From: Octopus bimaculoides
Taxonomy: Eukaryota
DNA: 37,399 bases
Direction: 5' to 3'
Assembly: GCF_001194135.2 (NCBI RefSeq)
Contig: NC_068990.1
Coordinates: 23,598,976 to 23,636,374 of the forward strand
Positions within the stretch are counted from its first letter, which is position 1, and every line of letters starts with the position of its first letter. The position numbers and the translations under genes are program-made. This document shows, one piece after another, positions 4,798-32,104 of the stretch. The notes under the pieces are model-generated. The model was not told where the DNA came from. It was given only the letters and a program-made list of their open reading frames with translations, and did not search any database.

Positions 4798-6524
4798 TAA
4801 TTGAGTGAAGTGAGTGAGTCAGTTTTGCAGGTTCTTGGATGTTGTCTTTCTTCTTGATATAAAATAATAAAAAGTGAATGGTAGCAACAAAGAACCAGGA
4901 ATTAGTGGTTCAATAGCACTTCAAGCAAAACATCATTACTTCATATAATGCCACTAGTACAGTGGTGTGTTAATAATTAAAACACTTGACGAACACTGTT
5001 TCAAGTCAACTCACTGTAAGAGGCTACCACAAAGTATAATGGCTCACACTATAAGCATATAAATCTCAGAATGATTTTATAAGATCTGCTAAAAGGGATC
5101 CTCCTGTAGGCTTGGATGATAGTATAAATACTGACAACAAGGCCCTATTTTCAGTTGCTCCATCAATGTTATTCTTTGAAAGTGAATTATATATATGACA
5201 AAAAAGAAAAAAAAAAGATTGCAGCACATCACAGTAGATATAGCAAGATTTGATCTCTGATGAGTTAGTTATTAGCAATCGAGTATCTTATCATAACAAC
5301 AGCTTGTAATACAAATTGTATTTGTCTTGGTATTTTAGCTCAAGATGGCTCACCAAGCAAGATTAAACACACAGAGAAATGAGTCAATGATGCAAGCATT
5401 TCATTTTGAGGTCAACCTTACTTCCTTTTTATCTGACTCATCATTCACCAAGTAGATAACAATTTTTTCATTAATAACTGTTTTTACCTCTCTTCCACAG
5501 AAATATCAGCCTAGATTTTAAGGATTTCCTTTATATGTCAAAGGGTCTTTGATATCAAAAAATAAATATATAAATAAATTTAAAATGTGTTCATGTCAAG
5601 GACTAGTTGTTTTTTTGGGGATTAAAAAAAAAAAAAATTCTCAGTGTTAATTTTGTTGCATGAGATAGAGAAAAATTATGCTATTAAATTACTAGCTGGA
5701 AGTAGCTAAAAATAAAATAAACACTATACATGTATTTAATTCACTGAACATTAAACAGCTAACTCGAAATCATTATAAGGCAAGGAAAAGTTTAACAAAA
5801 AAAAGTCGATGACCAAAATTATTTACATTTTCCCAGCAAGTACAAAAGACAACTCTGGTCATGTTTCACCTTCNNNNNNNNNNNNNNNNNNNNNNNNNNN
5901 NNNNNNNNNNNNNNNNNNNNNNNNNNNNNNNNNNNNNNNNNNNNNNNNNNNNNNNNNNNNNNNNNNNNNNNNNNNNNNNNNNNNNNNNNNNNNNNNNNNN
6001 NNNNNNNNNNNNNNNNNNNNNNNNNNNNNNNNNNNNNNNNNNNNNNNNNNNNNNNNNNNNNNNNNNNNNNNNNNNNNNNNNNNNNNNNNNNNNNNNNNNN
6101 NNNNNNNNNNNNNNNNNNNNNNNNNNNNNNNNNNNNNNNNNNNNNNNNNNNNNNNNNNNNNNNNNNNNNNNNNNNNNNNNNNNNNNNNNNNNNNNNNNNN
6201 NNNNNNNNNNNNNNNNNNNNNNNNNNNNNNNNNNNNNNNNNNNNNNNNNNNNNNNNNNNNNNNNNNNNNNNNNNNNNNNNNNNNNNNNNNNNNNNNNNNN
6301 NNNNNNNNNNNNNNNNNNNNNNNNNNNNNNNNNNNNNNNNNNNNNNNNNNNNNNNNNNNNNNNNNNNNNNNNNNNNNNNNNNNNNNNNNNNNNNNCTAAA
6401 ACTATATATATGTATGTATAATAATATTAGGGACAAAATCCAAAATTACAGGTAAAAACTCAATTAAAATCAATTTATAAAAAATTAAAATTAAATTGAG
6501 CTTTACAGATTAAAAAATATATAA

Positions 6525-11142: not shown

Positions 11143-13475
11143 TCATGCAATCTGCAGTTGTTATTCTGCACATAAACATGCAAAATTTTAATTTTATGAA
11201 ACTTCAACCTCTTTGCAAGTTGTATAAGATGCATAATTCTGGTAAACTAGAATTTCTCTAATATACTTGTCAGTGATGAAGATTCTTGCTGCATCTGTAC
11301 AGATGCAAACAATTACTCAGAAACACAATCTGTGTTTTGGTGAAATATATATTTTACCTCAATAAGTTGGCTGTGAATGAAACATCAGTCTAGATATGCA
11401 TTATCAAATTCAGTGAAATTTAAATAATCACCTGAGGAAGTGAATTCTACACCTTAGATGTAAAATAATGATTGCACAATATGTAACCTCTGTATTATAG
11501 GTGTAAGAATGTGTTGAAACACTTGTAGTGATTTGAAATAAGGAACGCAGTTAATTCCATTTTTCTTTCATTTGTCTATTTTACTTTAATATTTATATGC
11601 TTCATATATTTTCGTTTTTGTTTGTTCTAACACTTAAGGCACCTTGACTCTGAGTTATCTTAACCATTGAGGACAGTTGCAATGTAGACAGTATCGCAGA
11701 ATTTGGCAGCAGAGGGGAATCCAGGAATCATGACCAGGATGTGGTCCAACCTCAAGAGTCAAAACGCATGAGGTATATGTGTATAAGGGGACTTCTCCTA
11801 AGGTCTTCCACAGTTCAGCTCTCCCTAGGGTTCCTTACTAGCTGTTACCCTGCCCTCAAACGTGGTGAGAGCTAAGCAGGGATTTGTAATGTATATGAAT
11901 ATTTCTTGTATATGAATGTATATGACTATTTCTTAGGTTATGGGGCTCTAAAAGTGGTCTCAAGGAGTAGCATCTCTGCCTTCTTGAGCTAGGTTTCCAC
12001 CATATTTCTTAAAAATCATGGTAGGGGCCTTGGTCTCAGGACCACTCATGTCTAGAAACTGAGGTTGGGGGTAAGCAAGGGCATGCTCCTCAGAAAATCC
12101 AGCTCCAAAAAAGCCTCATAATAGCAAAGGAGAATGGGCACCAGCCAACCAGCCCAAAGGTCGGGGTGGGATGCACCTGACTACCTTGGTTGCTATGGCA
12201 TTGGGGTAGACGGCTACCCCTGTTAATGGGGACAAAACCGAGATTTAAAACACTGGATGATGATGATGACAATGATGACAATTTCTTGGGGAAGTGAAAT
12301 GACATTGAAACAGAGGTGTGTGTGTGTGTGTGTAAAAAATATAAAACAAATTAAAGTTTCCAAATAAATTCTACCAGAACCTTCATTCTCGTTGTATGAA
12401 ACAGAGATGGTAATAACACACAAGGGCTAAGTATAATAATAATAATAAAAAGACAAAAAAAAAAACCGAAAAAGACCTCTAACCCTCGTTTCCACGCCAT
12501 TTTTCTTCCCCATGAGTTATTCTGAAACTCTGCCGAGTATTTGTTTTGATTGGCAGACACCTTAGGTCTATAAGAAAGGGTCTTAGTATTATNNNNNNNN
12601 NNNNNNNNNNNNNNNNNNNNNNNNNNNNNNNNNNNNNNNNNNNNNNNNNNNNNNNNNNNNNNNNNNNNNNNNNNNNNNNNNNNNNNNNNNNNNNNNNNNN
12701 NNNNNNNNNNNNNNNNNNNNNNNNNNNNNNNNNNNNNNNNNNNNNNNNNNNNNNNNNNNNNNNNNNNNNNNNNNNNNNNNNNNNNNNNNNNNNNNNNNNN
12801 NNNNNNNNNNNNNNNNNNNNNNNNNNNNNNNNNNNNNNNNNNNNNNNNNNNNNNNNNNNNNNNNNNNNNNNNNNNNNNNNNNNNNNNNNNNNNNNNNNNN
12901 NNNNNNNNNNNNNNNNNNNNNNNNNNNNNNNNNNNNNNNNNNNNNNNNNNNNNNNNNNNNNNNNNNNNNNNNNNNNNNNNNNNNNNNNNNNNNNNNNNNN
13001 NNNNNNNNNNNNNNNNNNNNNNNNNNNNNNNNNNNNNNNNNNNNNNNNNNNNNNNNNNNNNNNNNNNNNNNNNNNNNNNNNNNNNNNNNNNNNNNNNNNN
13101 NNNNNNNNNNNNNNNNNNNNNNNNNNNNNNNNNNNNNNNNNNNNNNNNNNNNNNNNNNNNNNNNNNNNNNNNNNNNNNNNNNNNNNNNNNNNNNNNNNNN
13201 NNNNNNNNNNNNNNNNNNNNNNNNNNNNNNNNNNNNNNNNNNNNNNNNNNNNNNNNNNNNNNNNNNNNNNNNNNNNNNNNNNNNNNNNNNNNNNNNNNNN
13301 NNNNNNNNNNNNNNNNNNNNNNNNNNNNNNNNNNNNNNNNNNNNNNNNNNNNNNNNNNNNNNNNNNNNNNNNNNNNNNNNNNNNNNNNNNNNNNNNNNNN
13401 NNNNNNNNNNNNNNNNNNNNNNNNNNNNNNNNNNNNNNNNNNNNNNNNNNNNNNNNNNNNNNNNNNNNNNNNNNN

Positions 13476-14248: not shown

Positions 14249-14282
14249 TATAAAATAATAATAATAATAATAATAACAATGA

Positions 14283-15233
14283 TAACAAAATCCCAGCAAT
14301 GGCTGAGAAGCTCAGGACTCAAAGCAGAGACTGAGGGATTTTTAATTGCTGCACAAGACCAGAGCCTCCCCACCAGAAATTACCAAAAACACATAATGAA
14401 AAGAAATATAACAAGTAACTGTAGAATATGTGGAGATCGACAAGAAACAATAAATCATATTATCTCTGGCTGCCCAGTCCTGGCTAAGAAGGAATATATT
14501 CACAGACACGACAGAGCTGGGACCTATATACACTGGAAGCTATGCCAACACTATGGAATAACAACAGAAAAAAGATGGTATAAACACACGCCAGAAAAGG
14601 TCACAGAAAACGAGAAAGCAACCATACTCTGGGATATGCCAATACACACAGATAGAGAAATTAAGGCAAATAGACCAGATATAGTTGTCAAAGATCATGA
14701 AAAAAAAAATGCTTNNNNNNNNNNNNNNNNNNNNNNNNNNNNNNNNNNNNNNNNNNNNNNNNNNNNNNNNNNNNNNNNNNNNNNNNNNNNNNNNNNNNNN
14801 NNNNNNNNNNNNNNNNNNNNNNNNNNNNNNNNNNNNNNNNNNNNNNNNNNNNNNNNNNNNNNNNNNNNNNNNNNNNNNNNNNNNNNNNNNNNNNNNNNNN
14901 NNNNNNNNNNNNNNNNNNNNNNNNNNNNNNNNNNNNNNNNNNNNNNNNNNNNNNNNNNNNNNNNNNNNNNNNNNNNNNNNNNNNNNNNNNNNNNNNNNNN
15001 NNNNNNNNNNNNNNNNNNNNACATTCAGACAAATACATAACAAAAATACCAGGACTTACAAATATATATAACACAGAAAATTGCTCTACTGGGTACTGCA
15101 CACATTCTACGCAAAACACTTTCAATACAGTAAACATAAGAGCACCACAGCAAACCACAGCACATAACCAAGGCGCACAGAGCTGCGCTCGGTAGTGCAG
15201 TGAAAGCACGTTATAAAAATAAAACTACTGAAC
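14283..15233 (+). mobile_element. 5'-truncated R4/Dong-clade (RLE) non-LTR retrotransposon 3' end
   Basis: WLRSSGLKAETEGFLIAAQDQ, zinc knuckle CRICG..ETINHIISGC, RHD, restriction-like endonuclease RPDIVV, C-terminus QKIALLGTAHILRKTLSIQ* (stop 15131-15133), ~100-bp 3' UTR. (TAA)n lies on both sides. Contains a gap and a 2-bp frameshift near 15072. Confidence 0.9.
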
Positions 15234-15436: not shown

Positions 15437-16424
15437 GGTGTTTCGTATTACAAAACAGTGCTGGCTATAATTTGTATAGAAAATCAGTACAGATGACCTT
15501 CGCACGTGATTTAAGTGCACTGTTAACACAATAGTACACATTATTGATGTTTAATATACTTAGTAGTATATCATAGTCGCATAACGAAATACCGTGTGCC
15601 TTCACGTCCTGAATCTAAAACTGTGCCTTTTGCATTAAGGATACATAACAGTTATAAGAATAAATGACACCAGAAGTTGCCCAGCGCTCGATTCGAAGTT
15701 GGAATATAAAAGGCCTTAGCTATATATATCGTTGACACCTTTGGTGTTTTAATTATAATTCCAGTTATATTCCTTTAGATTTTTCAATAAAAGATAGATC
15801 TGTTATAGGCTTTTTATACCTAGCTTTAAATAGCTGTTACATGGTTCAGATTTTTTTTTTGAGGTAACCAACATGTTAAGGATCGTAAAATCTTAATGCG
15901 CACATATTGAAGGCAATCAAATATTCTGCATTATTTATGCCAGGTGAGTGTATGTGTGGTGTGTGTATGAGTATGCATGTATGTATGCATACATACACAC
16001 ACAGGTGCGCATGTGTATGTATGTATGTGTGTGTATATATATATACATACACACATCAAATATTCAAATGTACAACACGACAGACAACAAAAACATACGC
16101 GTACACACGTCAGCAGACATTTAGATGATGTCAATATCAGAGATCATTGAAGAGTTATCTCCCATCAAGGAAATGAAAGTAGCATCAACTGCTCTATAAT
16201 AAACACAATAGAAAACATCCCTCCCACTTGCGCAGCCCGCCACCTTATGCAATGATTCTCATTCTTATATAATATTTCTGTAATAAAATACCAATAGAAT
16301 TCTGTTAATACTTTTTTTCCTTTTCGTTTCTTTTCCATGAAATTCAGTCGAAATTTAAAATTAATAGCCAGTAAAATAAATACATTATTAAAAACAAAAG
16401 AACACTTTCAATTTTGTTTTGGTT

Positions 16425-17519
16425 TCACTTTCCGCTATCGCATTTGCGCGAACTCTTAAAATTTTGAACTTCTTGTAAAACTAAACTTTTCCATTCGTTT
16501 AAATTTAAATCCATGTCTTCAAAGACGTTTTCGAACATTTCTGCACGAATTTGATCTTTTGGATCGTAATTTACTTTGAGAAATTCGTGTTTCAAAGCGT
16601 TTTCCACATTCAGGCGAACGTCGACATCAAGCTGTAACATTTTGTCCAACAGATCTATGGCTTGGGGGTCAACGTTTTTAAAATACTTGTTAAAGTCCTG
16701 CCTTTCGCACTTATCGAAACTTTTCAGACATTCAACAATATCACTGCACGTGAATTTTTTCAGAGTATTACTGTCTGGTGATCCAACTAGATTGAAGATC
16801 TTGAGAATTTGATCCGTAAAAGACTTACCCGCAATTAAAGGCTTTCCCGTTAACATTTCGCCCATGATACAGGCTATAGACCATACATCGGCTGTCTGGT
16901 TGTATTTCATCCAGTTAAGAATCACCTCTGGAGCGCGATACCAGCGTGTTTGTACATAACCCGTCATCTCGTTGCTAATAGATCGAGCCAGACCGAAATC
17001 CAAAATTTTTATACAGTCGTTTTCTGTAACTCCGATATTTCTTGGTTTCAAATCCCTGTGTATAACTCCGGCCGAATGAATGTACTGGACACCACACAAT
17101 ATTTGGTACACCATAGATCGAACTCGAGCTGTATCAAGGCCTTCGTTTAATATTACGTGTTTCAAATCTTTGGGATAATACGTCGATACGAAGTATAAAT
17201 CGGTAAAGTCTATTTTCGTTAAGTCTGGTGTAAAAACATCTACGAGGTCGACGACATTTTTATGCTTCATGTGTTTTAATAATCGAAGTTCCCTGTAAGT
17301 TCTCTTCGATTCATCCACTGCGAAGAAAGCACGAGTAAGTTTTTTGATGGCCACTTTGCCTTCGATTCCTTCACACGTTGCCGAGCAGACTTGGCTATAA
17401 GCTCCATTGCCGACGTAAGATAAACAATCATAATAATCTGGGCAGTACCATTTTGTATGATAGATCTCCGTGAGTTTGTAATTTGTTGGCAGTTCTCTCG
17501 GAACTGATGAGGCTGCCAT
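16425..17519 (-). CDS. p38: Intronless p38-family (TGY) mitogen-activated protein kinase, 364 aa
   Basis: Uninterrupted ORF from ATG 17519 (aagtATGG context) to TGA 16427-16425. Motifs VAIKK, KRTYRELRLLKHMKH, HRDLKPxN, KILDFGLAR, EMTGYVxTRWYRAPE, LNWM, EWKSL are colinear with p38alpha end to end. The ORF-track start at 17633 is a TTG, not an ATG. Confidence 0.96.
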   Translation of the reverse strand: MAASSVPRELPTNYKLTEIYHTKWYCPDYYDCLSYVGNGAYSQVCSATCEGIEGKVAIKKLTRAFFAVDESKRTYRELRLLKHMKHKNVVDLVDVFTPDLTKIDFTDLYFVSTYYPKDLKHVILNEGLDTARVRSMVYQILCGVQYIHSAGVIHRDLKPRNIGVTENDCIKILDFGLARSISNEMTGYVQTRWYRAPEVILNWMKYNQTADVWSIACIMGEMLTGKPLIAGKSFTDQILKIFNLVGSPDSNTLKKFTCSDIVECLKSFDKCERQDFNKYFKNVDPQAIDLLDKMLQLDVDVRLNVENALKHEFLKVNYDPKDQIRAEMFENVFEDMDLNLNEWKSLVLQEVQNFKSSRKCDSGK

Positions 17520-18254
17520 ACTTTTTCCTTGTTTTCCTCTTCCCGTTAGGTTCGTCAGAATCGTAAACAAAATAAAAATCGCGCAACTTGCTCTATAATT
17601 GCAGAAGATAAAGGGAGGTAATTCGTATACCAAAGCTTTACCTCAATTACAGAGGCATGCCGTTTTATTTTCTCTCTAACCTCATTATAAATCCTCTAAA
17701 CCACTTCATTTAAAAAAAAAATCTTATTTGCTGTGTAAAATTTTATTTCGTACACACACACACACAAACACACAGAAACCTTTAATCATTGTTATTGTTG
17801 TAACTGCGTTTTTCTCTTCATCTTTTATTGATTCGTGTTGAGATAACACTCGAGCAAGTTTCTCCTGGTTTATTTCAGACTTCTAAATGGTACTTCAACA
17901 CACCACTAAAAGCTAATAAATCACCTGTTAATTATTTTAATTACTCAGTACTACTGCTCGGACCAATGATGGTGCCTCTGCTAGAAATAACAACCGAATC
18001 TCCCTTAAATCATACTAAAATGCACTGAAATAAAACATGGAAAAAACAAAAACAAAACAACAACAACAAAAAACCCCCGAAACGGAGCATTGCATAGTGT
18101 TGTCCAAAGCATATAAAAAGGACAGGATGGTCACGGTTGACTGGAGATGAAGAAAACCGCTACGTAGTTGTTTGTTCTGAAAGAAATAACTGGTAAATCT
18201 CCCTCAAATTATACTGTTATCTTCACAAGGAAAGAGGGAGAGCACACATTACGT

Positions 18255-20069: not shown

Positions 20070-20640
20070 CGTAAACACACACGTGCTGATGGCATGTAAA
20101 AAACACCCAGTACACTCTGTAAAGTGGTTGGTGTTAGTAAGGACATCCAGCTGTAGAAACCATGCCAAAACAGACAATTAGAGTCTGGACAGCTTGCCAA
20201 CTTGGCCAGTTTTATGTCAAACCATCCAACCCATGCCAGCATGGAGAATGGATGAGCGTGGCTTACCAGTTTGAGCATGGCCGTTGCAAGTACCACCTGA
20301 CTGGCCTTCGTAGGATTTTCGAGCGAGATCGTTGCCAGTGCCCCTGGACTGGCTCTTGTGCGGGTGGCACATAAAATGCACCAATTTGAGTGTGGCCGTT
20401 GCCAGTACCTCCTGACTGGCCTTCGTGCGGGTGACACGTAAAAGCACCCACTACACTCTCTGAGTGGTTGGCGTTAGGAAGGGCATCCAGCTGTAGAAAC
20501 TCTGCCAAATCAGATTGGAGCCTGGTGTTGCCATCCGGTTTCACCAGTCCTCAGTCAAATTGTCCAACCCATGCTAACATGGAAAGCGGACGTTAAACGA
20601 TGATGACGATGATGATGATGATGATGAAGATAATGAAGAT
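20070..20640 (+). mobile_element. Two tandem family D elements (variant 20070-20250; hairpin-array copy 20257-20640) with (GAT)n tail
   Basis: Hairpin monomers at 20286, 20334, 20401, then ggaagggcatccagctgtagaaac...ggacgttaaacgatgatg. Confidence 0.85.
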
Positions 20641-21039: not shown

Positions 21040-21785
21040 GCTTTCTTTTATTCTTTTATTTGTTTCACTCATGTGACTTTGGCCATGTTGGAGCACCACC
21101 TTTAGTTGAACAAATCGACCCCAAGACTTATTCTTTGTAAGCCTAGTACTTATACTATCGGTCTCTTTTGCTGAACCATTAAGTTATGGGGATGTAAACA
21201 CACCAACATCAGTTGTCAAATGATGATGCAAGGACAAACACAGGCACACAAATACATACGTCGATGCTAGGTCTGCCTGACTGGCTCCTGTGATGGTGGC
21301 ACATAAAAGCACCATCCAAACATAGCTGATGCCAGTACCCCCGATTGCCCCCCCCCCTTCCTCATGCCAGTAGCACATAAAAAGCACTATCCAAATGGGA
21401 TTGATGTCAGGCCCGCCTGACTGGCCCCAGTGCCAGTGGCATGTAAAAAGCACCCACTACACTCTCATAGTGGTTGACATTAGGAAGGGCATCCAGCTGT
21501 AGAAACACTGCCAGATCAGCTTGGAGACTGATGCAGCCGCTCGCTCCCCAGACCTCAGCAAAACCGACTAACCCATGCCAGCATGGAAAACGGACGTTAA
21601 ACGATGATGATGATGATGGTGGTGATGATGAATGGGCTTCTTTCAGTTTCCATCTACCGAATCCACTCACAAAGCTTTGGTCAGCCCGAGGCTATAGTAG
21701 AAAACACTTGCCCAAATGCCATGCAGTGGGACTGAACTTGCAACCATGTGGTTGGGAAGCATACTCCTTACCTCACAGTCACACT
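21040..21785 (-). mobile_element. Family C SINE with a family D element (+, ~21260-21629) nested in its central microsatellite
   Basis: C 3' half at 21040-21259 and C 5' half at 21630-21785, separated by a D copy ending in (GAT)n. Confidence 0.8.
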
Positions 21786-22323: not shown

Positions 22324-23258
22324 TACATACATACAGACAGAGAATGTAAACAAATACATATATNNNNNNNNNNNNNNNNNNNNNNNNNNNNNNNNNNNNN
22401 NNNNNNNNNNNNNNNNNNNNNNNNNNNNNNNNNNNNNNNNNNNNNNNNNNNNNNNNNNNNNNNNNNNNNNNNNNNNNNNNNNNNNNNNNNNNNNNNNNNN
22501 NNNNNNNNNNNNNNNNNNNNNNNNNNNNNNNNNNNNNNNNNNNNNNNNNNNNNNNNNNNNNNNNNNNNNNNNNNNNNNNNNNNNNNNNNNNNNNNNNNNN
22601 NNNNNNNNNNNNNNNNNNNNNNNNNNNNNNNNNNNNNNNNNNNNNNNNNNNNNNNNNNNNNNNNNNNNNNNNNNNNNNNNNNNNNNNNNNNNNNNNNNNN
22701 NNNNNNNNNNNNNNNNNNNNNNNNNNNNNNNNNNNNNNNNNNNNNNNNNNNNNNNNNNNNNNNNNNNNNNNNNNNNNNNNNNNNNNNNNNNNNNNNNNNN
22801 NNNNNNNNNNNNNNNNNNNNNNNNNNNNNNNNNNNNNNNNNNNNNNNNNNNNNNNNNNNNNNNNNNNNNNNNNNNNNNNNNNNNNNNNNNNNNNNNNNNN
22901 NNNNNNNNNNNNNNNNNNNNNNNNNNNNNNNNNNNNNNNNNNNNNNNNNNNNNNNNNNNNNNNNNNNNNNNNNNNNNNNNNNNNNNNNNNNNNNNNNNNN
23001 NNNNNNNNNNNNNNNNNNNNNNNNNNNNNNNNNNNNNNNNNNNNNNNNNNNNNNNNNNNNNNNNNNNNNNNNNNNNNNNNNNNNNNNNNNNNNNNNNNNN
23101 NNNNNNNNNNNNNNNNNNNNNNNNNNNNNNNNNNNNNNNNNNNNNNNNNNNNNNNNNNNNNNNNNNNNNNNNNNNNNNNNNNNNNNNNNNNNNNNNNNNN
23201 NNNNNNNNNNNNNNNNNNNNNNNNNNNTAAAAGAAACAATTTGTGAACATTGAATCTT

Positions 23259-23784: not shown

Positions 23785-24447
23785 GTGGAGGCGCAATTGG
23801 CCTAGTGGTTAGGGCAGCAGACTTGTGGTCGTAGGATAGCGGTTTCAATTCCCAGACCGGGCGCTGTGAGTGTTTATTGAGCGAAAACACCTAAAGCTTC
23901 ACCAGGCTCCGGCAGGGAATGGTGGCAAACCCTGCTGTACTCTTTCACTACAACTTTCTCTCACTCTTTCTTCCTGTTTCTGTTGTACTTGTATTTCAAA
24001 GGGCCAGCCTTGTCACACTGTGTCACGCTGAATCTCTTCGAGAACTACGTTAAGGGTACACGTGTCTGTGGAGTGCTCAGCCACTTGCACGTTAATTTCA
24101 CGAACAAGCTGTTCCGTTGATCGGATNNNNNNNNNNAGACCGGGCGCTGTGAGTGTTTATTGAGCGAAAACACCTAAAGCTTCACCAGGCTCCGGCAGGG
24201 AATGGTGGCAAACCCTGCTGTACTCTTTCACTACAACTTTCTCTCACTCTTTCTTCCTGTTTCTGTTGTACTTGTATTTCAAAGGGCCAGCCTTGTCACA
24301 CTGTGTCACGCTGAATCTCTTCGAGAACTACGTTAAGGGTACACGTGTCTGTGGAGTGCTCAGCCACTTGCACGTTAATTTCACGAACAAGCTGTTCCGT
24401 TGATCGGATCAACTGGAACCCTCGCTGTCATAACCGACGGAGTGCCA
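23785..24447 (+). mobile_element. tRNA-derived SINE (head H1 + tail T2); internal 273-bp duplication is an assembly overlap
   Basis: Imperfect TSD ACCTA(A)TTCATC(A/G)TCA on both sides. 23854-24126 is identical to 24137-24409 across a 10-N gap. Confidence 0.88.
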
Positions 24448-25399: not shown

Positions 25400-25815
25400 T
25401 TACCAGTCATCTTTCTATGCTTGGCTTCCGTGCCAGTGACATGTAAATAACACCACTTGAGCGTGACCGTTACCAGTGTCGCCTTACTGGCACTTGTGCT
25501 GGTGGCACGTGAAAAATCATTTGAGCGAGGTCGTTGCCAGTGCCGCTGGACTGGCTCCTGTGCAGGTGGCACGTAAAAACCACCACTTTGAGCGTGGCTG
25601 TTGCCAGTACCGCCTGACTGGCCCTTATGCCGGTGGCACATAAAAGCACCCACTACACTCTCGGAGTGGTTGGCATTAGGAAGGGCATCCAGCTGTAGAA
25701 ACTCTGCCAGTTCAGATTGGAGCCTGGTGCAGCCATCTGGTTCGCCAGTTCTCAGTCAAATCGTCCAACCCATGCCAGCATGGAAAGCAGACGTTAAATG
25801 ATGATGATGATCATG
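25400..25815 (+). mobile_element. Family D element
   Basis: Hairpin monomers at 25472, 25536, 25603, plus the tail and (GAT)n. Confidence 0.85.
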
Positions 25816-26130
25816 ATGATATAAATGTATGTATGTATGTATTCTATTGTATACTATATCATTGCAGCAAAACAATTTACACCCCAGTAGTTTGTTAATT
25901 GAATTACCTTCCTACAAAATACATTATACATGCAAACCTGTCTGTCTGGTATACACAAGCTCATAGCATTCATGGATTTATGAGCAATGTTACCATGAAC
26001 AACTAATGGTGGCTCTTGATCAGTGATAAAACCCCCAACACAGGATTTAAACTTGCTCACCTTATCACTCTCTTTTTTTCTTTTATCATAAAGACAGTGT
26101 ATAGAATATTGTATGAAGTATCTCTGTTTG

Positions 26131-26400: not shown

Positions 26401-26424
26401 TTTCTTGAACCATAAGCCTGCCAT

Positions 26425-26511
26425 ATCAGATTGGAGCCTGGTGCAGCCATCTGGTTCGTCAGTCCTCAATCAAATCGACCAACCCATGCTAGCATGGAAA
26501 CTGGACGTTAA

Positions 26512-26545
<34 letters not shown>
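26425..26545 (+). mobile_element. Family D 3' tail fragment with (GAT)n
   Basis: tcagattggagcctggtgcagccatctggttcg...ggacgttaaatgatgatg. Confidence 0.8.
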
Positions 26546-26581
<36 letters not shown>

Positions 26582-28339: not shown

Positions 28340-28795
28340 TATCGGTGGAGCGCTAAGAGCACCGTCCGAGCGTGTTCATTGCCAGAGCAGCTGTCTAGCT
28401 TCCATGCCAGTGGCACGTAAATAGCACCATTTGAGTGTGATTGTTACCAGCCTCGCCTTACTGGTACTTGTGCCGGTGGCACGTGAAAAAACATTTGAGC
28501 GAGGTCGTTGCGAGTGCCACTGGACTGGCTCCTGTACAGGTGGCACATAAAATACTCCATTTTGAGCATGGCTGTTGCCAGTACCACCTGACTGGCCCTC
28601 ATGCTGGTGACACGTAAAAGCACCCACTACACTCTCGGAGTGGTTAGCATTAGGAAGGGCATCCAGCTGTAGAAACTCTGCCAGATCAGATTGGAGCCTG
28701 GTGCAGCCATCTGGTTCGCCAGTCCTCAGTCAAATCGTCCAACCCATGCTAGCATGGAAGGTGAACGTTAAACGACGATGATGATGATGATGATC
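28340..28795 (+). mobile_element. Family D element
   Basis: Monomers at 28446, 28510, 28577, plus the tail and (GAT)n. Confidence 0.85.
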
Positions 28796-28829
28796 TATAT
28801 AACCTTGCTATTTATATAATCCTAATTTA

Positions 28830-31641: not shown

Positions 31642-32104
31642 NNNNNNNNNNNNNNNNNNNNNNNNNNNNNNNNNNNNNNNNNNNNNNNNNNNNNNNNNNN
31701 NNNNNNNNNNNNNNNNNNNNNNNNNNNNNNNNNNNNNNNNNNNNNNNNNNNNNNNNNNNNNNNNNNNNNNNNNNNNNNNNNNNNNNNNNNNNNNNNNNNN
31801 NNNNNNNNNNNNNNNNNNNNNNNNNNNNNNNNNNNNNNNNNNNNNNNNNNNNNNNNNNNNNNNNNNNNNNNNNNNNNNNNNNNNNNNNNNNNNNNNNNNN
31901 NNNNNNNNNNNNNNNNNNNNNNNNNNNNNNNNNNTGTCTGCTTTGGCAATATGTGTTTTTTTGTGGGGGTCTGATGGGAGGCAAATGGAAGGGTCGCCCC
32001 GGGCGGCACACACTCTAGCTACGCTAGTGCATGTGTGTATGAGTGTGCGTGTGTGTGTATGAGTGTGTGTGTGTGTGTGTGTGTGTGTATGAGTGTGTGT
32101 GTGT

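Follow-up and report, generated by a model that had tools for sequence, protein, structure and literature searches.

A single-exon p38-class MAP kinase gene of Octopus bimaculoides belongs to an intronless, locally clustered cephalopod family

We analysed a stretch of 37,399 nucleotides of the Octopus bimaculoides genome (NCBI RefSeq assembly GCF_001194135.2, contig NC_068990.1, forward-strand positions 23,598,976 to 23,636,374; hereafter the window), in which an earlier note had pointed to an intact, intronless paralogue of the stress-activated mitogen-activated protein kinase (MAPK) p38 and had read it as an old retrocopy kept by purifying selection. The open reading frame (ORF) concerned is listed on the minus strand at 16425-17633; its first ATG lies at 17519 and its TGA stop at 16427-16425, and translation of 17519-16425 yields 364 codons plus the stop in a single uninterrupted exon of 1095 bp, in agreement with the coordinates, strand and intactness first reported. 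Because the GC content of the window is ~36%, a chance origin of a stop-free run this long was dismissed. The start codon stands in a favourable context, with A at -3 and G at +4, and Argonauta shares a conserved N-terminus (MAASS...LPT). The protein is encoded at ~23.6 Mb on O. bimaculoides chromosome CM046610.1 (GCA_001194135.2, 94.6 Mb), and the locus is collinear with that of O. vulgaris across the entire 20 kb compared. Since the gene thus sits on a 94.6-Mb octopus chromosome collinear with O. vulgaris, contaminant DNA, which the earlier note had named as a possible source of error, was excluded. Orthologues are already annotated as XP_029640880.1 (O. sinensis, "mitogen-activated protein kinase HOG1-like") and CAI9729297.1 (O. 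vulgaris, "p38b-like isoform X2"). No further kinase-like sequence was found within the window. Features of the gene and its flanks are collected in Table 1.

The protein carries a Pfam Pkinase domain (E 1.7e-57). In a sequence search of the PDB, all 60 matches listed were p38 alpha, beta or gamma (MAPK14, MAPK11 or MAPK12), and the best of them, human MAPK14 (E 2e-104), aligned from residues 3-354 of the octopus protein to 3-353 with one single-residue gap. An AlphaFold (AF2) model built with a 34-sequence alignment as input reached a mean predicted local distance difference test score (pLDDT) of 88.3 and a predicted template modelling score (pTM) of 0.89. This model superimposed on p38alpha structures with template modelling (TM) scores of 0.90-0.95 and a root-mean-square deviation of 1.5 Å to dual-phosphorylated p38alpha, and the 50 Foldseek matches listed were p38alpha, plus one p38gamma. 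Among the structure matches listed in the PDB and Foldseek searches, the protein was placed nearer p38 than other MAPK subfamilies. Taken together, the ORF in the window encodes a full-length p38-class MAPK.

The catalytic motifs were all found in the translation, namely the VAIK lysine (Lys59), the alphaC glutamate (Glu77), HRD (154-156), DFG (174-176), the TGY dual-phosphorylation motif (186-188) and APE, and the DFG-to-APE segment aligned without gaps to human and mollusc p38. The earlier description of these motifs as intact held with two corrections: the third glycine of the glycine-rich loop is serine (G36S in human p38alpha numbering, which is used for substitutions throughout), a change present in every cephalopod-type p38, as we call the window protein and its relatives, and the catalytic loop reads HRDLKPRN. 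TGY is invariant in the 13 cephalopod-type sequences analysed, all of which also keep K53, E71, R70, R149, D150, K152, N155 and D168 as well as R173, T180, Y182, R186, R189 and E192; the phospho-threonine-binding arginines are present in the window protein. Outside these residues, the window protein departs from canonical p38 at 49 of the 160 sites on which 11 canonical sequences agree without exception. Changes at the ATP site comprise G36S, the gatekeeper substitution T106S and the hinge substitutions H107T, L108Y, M109Y and G110P, with T106S, M109Y and G110P/S/T recurring in the hinge across the family. The P+1 region carries A184Q, and the docking surface carries I116V, Q120E, H126R, D161N, D315K and E317Q. 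Within the CD and ED docking sites, D313, D316 and E160 are retained, D315 is replaced by lysine and D161 by asparagine; position D315 is serine in canonical molluscs too. Canonical p38 is a proline-directed stress kinase activated by MKK3/6 through dual phosphorylation. Because every catalytic and dual-phosphorylation residue is retained, the default expectation, by analogy with that kinase, is that the window protein would be catalytically competent, would be phosphorylated on Thr186 and Tyr188 by an MKK3/6-type kinase and would act on Ser/Thr-Pro substrates in stress or immune signalling.

Pairwise identity among canonical p38 proteins of Patella, Aplysia, Biomphalaria, three bivalves, Lingula, Capitella and human is 68-88%. 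Canonical invertebrate p38s in this set are 69-75% identical to human p38, and the overall span across molluscs, a brachiopod, an annelid and human is 69-77%. Cephalopod-type proteins, in contrast, are 40-49% identical to canonical p38; the window protein, at 45-48%, has diverged less than any other octopod paralogue and shows the heavy divergence that had been described for it. In a database search, only ten clusters were nearer to the window protein than canonical p38 is, including the window protein itself and its Argonauta orthologue. Two octopus relatives annotated as "MAPK14" (P0008 and P0009) are 52-53% identical to the window protein, two further relatives are from Argonauta (P0010 and P0012), and four clusters come from Logan or ENA data (P0003, 66% identical; P0004, P0006 and P0007, 56-59%).

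In a neighbour-joining tree built from p38 sequences, the cephalopod-type sequences formed one long-stemmed clade with 100% bootstrap support, and in a tree of 267 p38 sequences all 27 of them were monophyletic, bearing out the lineage-specific branch that had been proposed. Fourteen derived residues are common to the whole clade. Within it, the window gene and its orthologues (A type) group with P0003 and P0130 at 73% bootstrap, with 65% identity as against 59-60% to the B type, and the C type (P0008, P0009, P0010, P0012) joins the B type (P0004, P0006, P0007) at 84% bootstrap. This topology suggests that the split between A and B/C is older than the separation of octopods from the lineage of ENA assembly ERZ21867824, if that assembly represents one organism; from its tree position and divergence, this second lineage is probably decapodiform (squid or cuttlefish). 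Counts of signature sites were too few to decide the relations among A, B and C. The sequence P0013, considered as a canonical cephalopod p38 since it fell beside the clade with 97.5% bootstrap, was rejected; its relatives are copepods and marine metatranscriptomes, and we read its position as long-branch attraction. The same reading was given to the clade's nearest neighbours in the 267-sequence tree, a Bulinus paralogue and nematodes, which we did not take as kin. Separately, we observed strongly divergent p38-like proteins in a gastropod lineage, namely P0045 (Bulinus truncatus "MAPK14") and P0035, which is 88% identical to P0045, ~63% identical to canonical p38 and drawn to the cephalopod clade in neighbour-joining trees.

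As the earlier note had stated for metazoan p38 genes in general, canonical p38 is rich in introns: in the limpet Patella caerulea it is divided among at least 10 coding exons over 16.3 kb, whereas no intron interrupts the window coding sequence (CDS). The window gene is, however, not alone in lacking introns. Single-exon CDSs were found in O. vulgaris (P0122, 1095 bp; P0009, 1077 bp; P0008, 1071 bp), in Argonauta (P0002, 1095 bp; P0012, 1080 bp; P0010, 1071 bp) and in ERZ21867824 (the A-like P0130, 1098 bp; the B-like P0007, 1086 bp), a count that covers every cephalopod-type locus fetched, with P0004 and P0006 outside the set. Each of these loci was recovered as one unbroken tblastn high-scoring segment pair, in contrast with the split pairs of the Patella gene.

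The family is also clustered. Three genes lie within 82 kb on O. vulgaris OX597823.1: the A-type orthologue of the window gene (83,395,166-83,396,260, plus strand) and the C-type genes P0009 (83,448,411-83,449,487, minus strand) and P0008 (83,475,937-83,477,007, plus strand). In Argonauta, 5 kb separate the A-type gene (plus strand) from the C-type gene P0012 (minus strand), the two being oriented to each other as in O. vulgaris, and the pair has a PNP_UDP_1 gene and a sugar-transporter gene as its flanking neighbours. The O. bimaculoides chromosome that carries the window also holds partial P0009-like (C-type) models; the nearest O. vulgaris paralogue is 53 kb downstream, and its equivalent would fall outside the window. 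We count the window gene as one of three octopod p38 genes that are clustered and have no coding introns. Adjacent paralogues in an arrangement kept between species make this a locally duplicated family, and the best explanation is that A and C types have been neighbours since before the split of Octopus and Argonauta. Because retrocopies insert at unrelated sites, this conserved neighbourhood points to DNA duplication of a gene that was already intronless. Synteny, which the earlier note had proposed as a check, is present in the collinearity with O. vulgaris and in the A-C pairing kept in Argonauta, and the latter goes against an independent retrocopy. The picture of the window gene as a lone retrocopy is not supported, given that every fetched cephalopod-type p38 is single-exon and belongs to one clade with a conserved cluster.

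Several further observations concern the C-type genes and the Argonauta assembly. The Argonauta genes P0010 and P0012 are on different scaffolds, and the region holding PNP_UDP_1, A-type and C-type genes is present twice in the same order (BAAFZT010000028.1 and BAAFZT010000007.1), which could reflect a haplotig left in the assembly or else a segmental duplication of recent date. C-type paralogues pair within species, P0008 with P0009 in O. vulgaris (L004, L006) and P0010 with P0012 in Argonauta (L007, L001), at a synonymous divergence (dS) of 0.29 and 0.21 and a ratio of nonsynonymous to synonymous divergence (dN/dS) of 0.27-0.29. Similarity between the members of a pair ends ~40 nt (Octopus) or ~200 nt (Argonauta) beyond the CDS, a pattern consistent with gene conversion limited to the CDS, or with small duplications of recent date.

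Intact 364-codon orthologues of the window gene were recovered from four other taxa, giving five species in all. Amino-acid identity to the window protein is 98% in O. vulgaris and O. sinensis, 97.5% in a third Octopus species represented by genomic Logan contigs only, and 86% in Argonauta hians. Nei-Gojobori estimates of dN/dS are 0.046 for the comparison with O. vulgaris (dS 0.18) and 0.041 for that with Argonauta, where dS, at 1.9, is close to saturation. Between Octopus species, identity is 99.5-99.7% at second codon positions, 97.8% at first positions and 87-91% at third positions, the last near the level of the flanks (81-94%). By evolutionary criteria the gene is functional and under strong purifying selection, as had been proposed.

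Expression was assessed from assembled sequence data. Contigs L017-L020 were considered as octopus transcripts and rejected, being collinear with the genome and ending in (GGT)n and (TA)n at identical positions. In the second, presumed decapodiform lineage, A-type and B-type proteins were each found on more than 120 Logan contigs, members of the A-type cluster occurred on more than 130, and A-type contigs from three runs begin 86-98 nt upstream of the ATG, resembling assemblies of RNA-seq reads. This start pattern is indirect evidence that the A-type gene may be expressed in that lineage. The transcript-like A-type contigs L009 and L010 break at ~3390-3530 of L008, ~2.2 kb downstream of the stop, in a transposase-like ORF (MAAPLSVCTKEEQRVVI...).

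Octopus and Argonauta flanks are largely unalignable, with three blocks persisting upstream of the gene (Table 1). The block directly before the ATG is probably 5' untranslated region (5'-UTR). The pyrimidine-rich element could serve as a splice acceptor in the 5'-UTR or as part of the core promoter, and the more distant block is a candidate promoter or first non-coding exon. On the other side of the gene, the ATTAAA hexamer that had been reported is real and is the first of its kind past the stop. The T-rich tract (A-rich on the coding strand) that had been suggested as a decayed poly(A) tail also exists, but was rejected as a poly(A) relic: 18 tracts as rich or richer occur in 34 kb of the AT-rich window, so that it is indistinguishable from background, and it does not align to the Argonauta flank. 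Among Octopus species, the tract is retained at the level of neutral flanks. No target-site duplication was found, the sole flanking repeat being a 30-nt pair of 73% identity, the downstream copy of which is 112 nt away from the A-rich tract rather than adjacent to it. The loss of such relics would be expected of an old event, because synonymous sites are saturated between Octopus and Argonauta.

Table 1. Features of the p38-class kinase gene and its flanks, in window coordinates.
Feature	Position	Strand	Basis or remark
p38-class MAP kinase CDS, 364 aa + TGA	16425..17519	-	ORF, Pfam, PDB/Foldseek matches, orthologues
Glycine-rich loop GNGAYS, residues 37-42	17394..17411	-	Alignment; G36S in human p38alpha numbering
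HRD catalytic motif, His154-Arg155-Asp156	17052..17060	-	Translation, alignment
Activation segment, DFG (16992-17000) to TGY (16956-16964)	16956..17000	-	Length equal to p38alpha
53 nt directly before ATG, probably 5'-UTR	17520..17572	-	Flank alignment; conserved between Octopus and Argonauta
Pyrimidine-rich element GAATTACCTCCCTTTA then AG	17593..17624	-	Argonauta alignment; ~75-105 nt upstream of ATG
Conserved non-coding block, 78% over 64 nt vs Argonauta	17861..17924	-	~340-405 nt upstream of ATG
Interrupted A-rich tract (coding strand)	16312..16336	-	18 T + 6 C of 25; 89-113 nt past stop
ATTAAA, first AATAAA/ATTAAA hexamer after stop (672 nt)	15748..15753	-	Candidate polyadenylation signal

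The remainder of the window holds repeats and assembly gaps. A (TG/TA)n microsatellite occupies 15948-16063, ~360-480 nt downstream of the stop, and the genomic contigs of the third Octopus species end in (TA)n at the corresponding place. A zf-RVT (PF13966, E 2.6e-6) ORF fragment on the plus strand (14279-14713), representing the C-terminal part of the reverse transcriptase of a retrotransposon without long terminal repeats (non-LTR), is found on the strand opposite the kinase gene, 1.7 kb downstream of it, and is cut by an N gap (14715-15020). Upstream of the gene there is a SINE-like (short interspersed nuclear element) repeat of ~130-400 bp with copies 74-90% identical at ~20318-20634, 21370-21632, 25520-25820, 26418-26549 and 28398-28800, and the repeat has copies in the loci of O. 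vulgaris and Argonauta as well. Seven runs of N total ~3.1 kb (1846-2078, 5874-6395, 12593-13475, 14715-15020, 22364-23227, 24127-24136 and 31642-31934), and read-through of these gaps is all that lies behind many long "ORFs" in the list for the window. Two 273-bp copies that are 100% identical (23854-24126 and 24137-24409) stand either side of the 10-N gap at 24127-24136 and are probably an assembly artefact, an unmerged overlap, rather than a biological duplication.

An intron-containing p38 is present in the outgroup Patella, as described above; no intron-containing parent was found in cephalopods among the matches listed. A search with a profile built from 8 canonical lophotrochozoan p38s placed no cephalopod sequence among its best 120 matches (at least 685 bits). 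Represented there are 14 named mollusc species, together with annelids, a brachiopod and many arthropods; the score at the 120th match falls in a densely populated range, and the absence of cephalopods from the best 120 is only suggestive. At least four cephalopod genomes with annotated proteins are in the database searched. Several canonical ENA/Logan sequences (among them P0262, P0263, P0268 and P0069) are without a close named neighbour, which weakens the case for loss of the parent. Loss of canonical p38 in cephalopods, i.e. replacement by a retrogene, is thus a live but unproven possibility.

The window gene encodes an intact p38-class kinase and belongs to a cephalopod-specific intronless family, which we consider likely to have arisen through one RNA-mediated loss of introns followed by DNA duplications. 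An mRNA-derived copy of an intron-rich ancestral p38 would have formed once, via retroposition or cDNA-mediated conversion, before octopods split from the second, probably decapodiform, lineage. This copy would then have evolved fast, with remodelling of the ATP hinge (T106S, M109Y, G110P/S/T), the glycine-rich loop (G36S) and the docking surfaces, and would have multiplied by ordinary DNA duplication. The A-type gene is maintained by strong purifying selection. A single RNA-mediated ancestral event is favoured because ~10 coding introns are missing together in all fetched members of a monophyletic family. What remains of the retrocopy first proposed is that the gene is old, intronless and under purifying selection; its own retroposition, with a poly(A) tail and a surviving parent, fits poorly with a family that is intronless and clustered throughout.

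Four points weigh against this account. The relics of retroposition are absent, so that we infer the RNA step solely from the simultaneous lack of all coding introns. Retroposition to a new locus and intron loss in place are not separable by the present evidence. Relations within the clade are moderately resolved (73% and 84%), so that the timing of the A versus B/C split is provisional. Finally, no transcript evidence was obtained from octopus, the Logan contigs carrying the protein all being genomic unitigs.

The second of these points bears on an alternative that we regard as unlikely, namely that intron loss occurred at the ancestral p38 locus itself, by cDNA recombination or stepwise, and that the cluster is the original locus. 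It would account for a family that is a stable, conserved local cluster, for the lack of insertion hallmarks at the window gene and for the lack of any further, canonical p38 locus of cephalopods among the matches listed. Its stepwise form, however, fits less well than a single cDNA event with the disappearance of ~10 introns and the survival of none in any paralogue. We regard as more improbable still that the window gene was itself copied by retroposition from a canonical p38 with introns that persists elsewhere in the octopus genome. A CDS without introns, compared with the at least 10 exons of Patella p38, is what such a copy would look like, the zf-RVT fragment attests to retrotransposon activity of the LINE (long interspersed nuclear element) type in the region, and a parent could lie beyond the best 120 matches of the canonical searches. 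On the other hand, the sister paralogues are intronless too and form one clade with the window gene, which has a paralogue close by in Octopus as well as in Argonauta although retrocopies land at unrelated sites; the putative poly(A) relic does not rise above background, target-site duplications were not found, and cephalopods are missing from the best 120 canonical matches, which include 14 named species of other molluscs and many arthropods. That the ORF is a relic without function or a pseudokinase open by chance, as the serine in the glycine-rich loop, several altered docking residues and the purely genomic octopus contigs might suggest, is highly improbable in view of an ORF kept intact in five species across saturated synonymous divergence at a dN/dS of 0.04-0.05, the contrast between second and third codon positions, the retention of all catalytic and phospho-acceptor residues in 13 cephalopod-type sequences and the transcript-like contigs from three runs of the second lineage.

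Relative to known systems, the window protein shares with canonical p38 (human MAPK14 and the Aplysia, Biomphalaria and Patella proteins) a collinear kinase with TGY, the activation-loop length, the catalytic residues and the predicted fold, but differs from it in its low identity, its many changes at invariant positions and its lack of coding introns. Fungal Hog1 is likewise a TGY-type stress MAPK; "HOG1-like" is nevertheless a best-hit label only, as all PDB matches listed were animal p38 and the clade falls among animal p38s. Tandem p38 clusters exist in vertebrates (MAPK14-MAPK13 and MAPK11-MAPK12) and in C. elegans (pmk-1/2/3), and like the octopod cluster they consist of adjacent paralogues from local DNA duplication; those clusters keep their introns, and in vertebrates also high conservation, whereas the octopod cluster is intronless throughout. 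Retrogene replacement has been described under the term "orphaned retrogenes", with amphioxus SYCP1 as an example (PMC5803294). That gene resembles the octopod case in being a single-coding-exon gene where other animals have a multi-exon one, with no multi-exon copy detected, but it is defined by its relocated position, while the octopod family is locally multiplied and very fast-diverging and the loss of its parent is only possible. Of the features that mark retrogenes, the absence of ancestral introns was observed, and a poly(A) tract and target-site duplications were not. We found no relevant paper in the literature on cephalopod p38 gene structure or on p38 retrogenes.

The gene itself is ordinary, a conserved and already annotated, if divergent, paralogue; both its kinase family and its kind of gene structure are familiar. 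The interest lies at the level of the family, in that cephalopod p38 genes appear to lack introns throughout, to form clusters and to evolve fast. Both the sensitivity to inhibitors and the docking of partners may differ from those of canonical p38. Thr106, Met109 and Gly110 shape the binding of classical p38 inhibitors, and because these hinge residues all differ, p38 inhibitors may not transfer to cephalopods; phospho-TGY antibodies should still work on cephalopod p38. We tentatively raise, as a possibility that we hold somewhat doubtful, that coleoids lost canonical p38 and that their stress pathway is run wholly by a fast-evolved, locally amplified, retrogene-derived family. If true, this would be a retrogene replacement followed by the rewiring of a core signalling kinase, and since p38 is among the most conserved animal signalling kinases, the cephalopod family would offer a clean natural case of a core kinase that diversified after being reset via an RNA intermediate.

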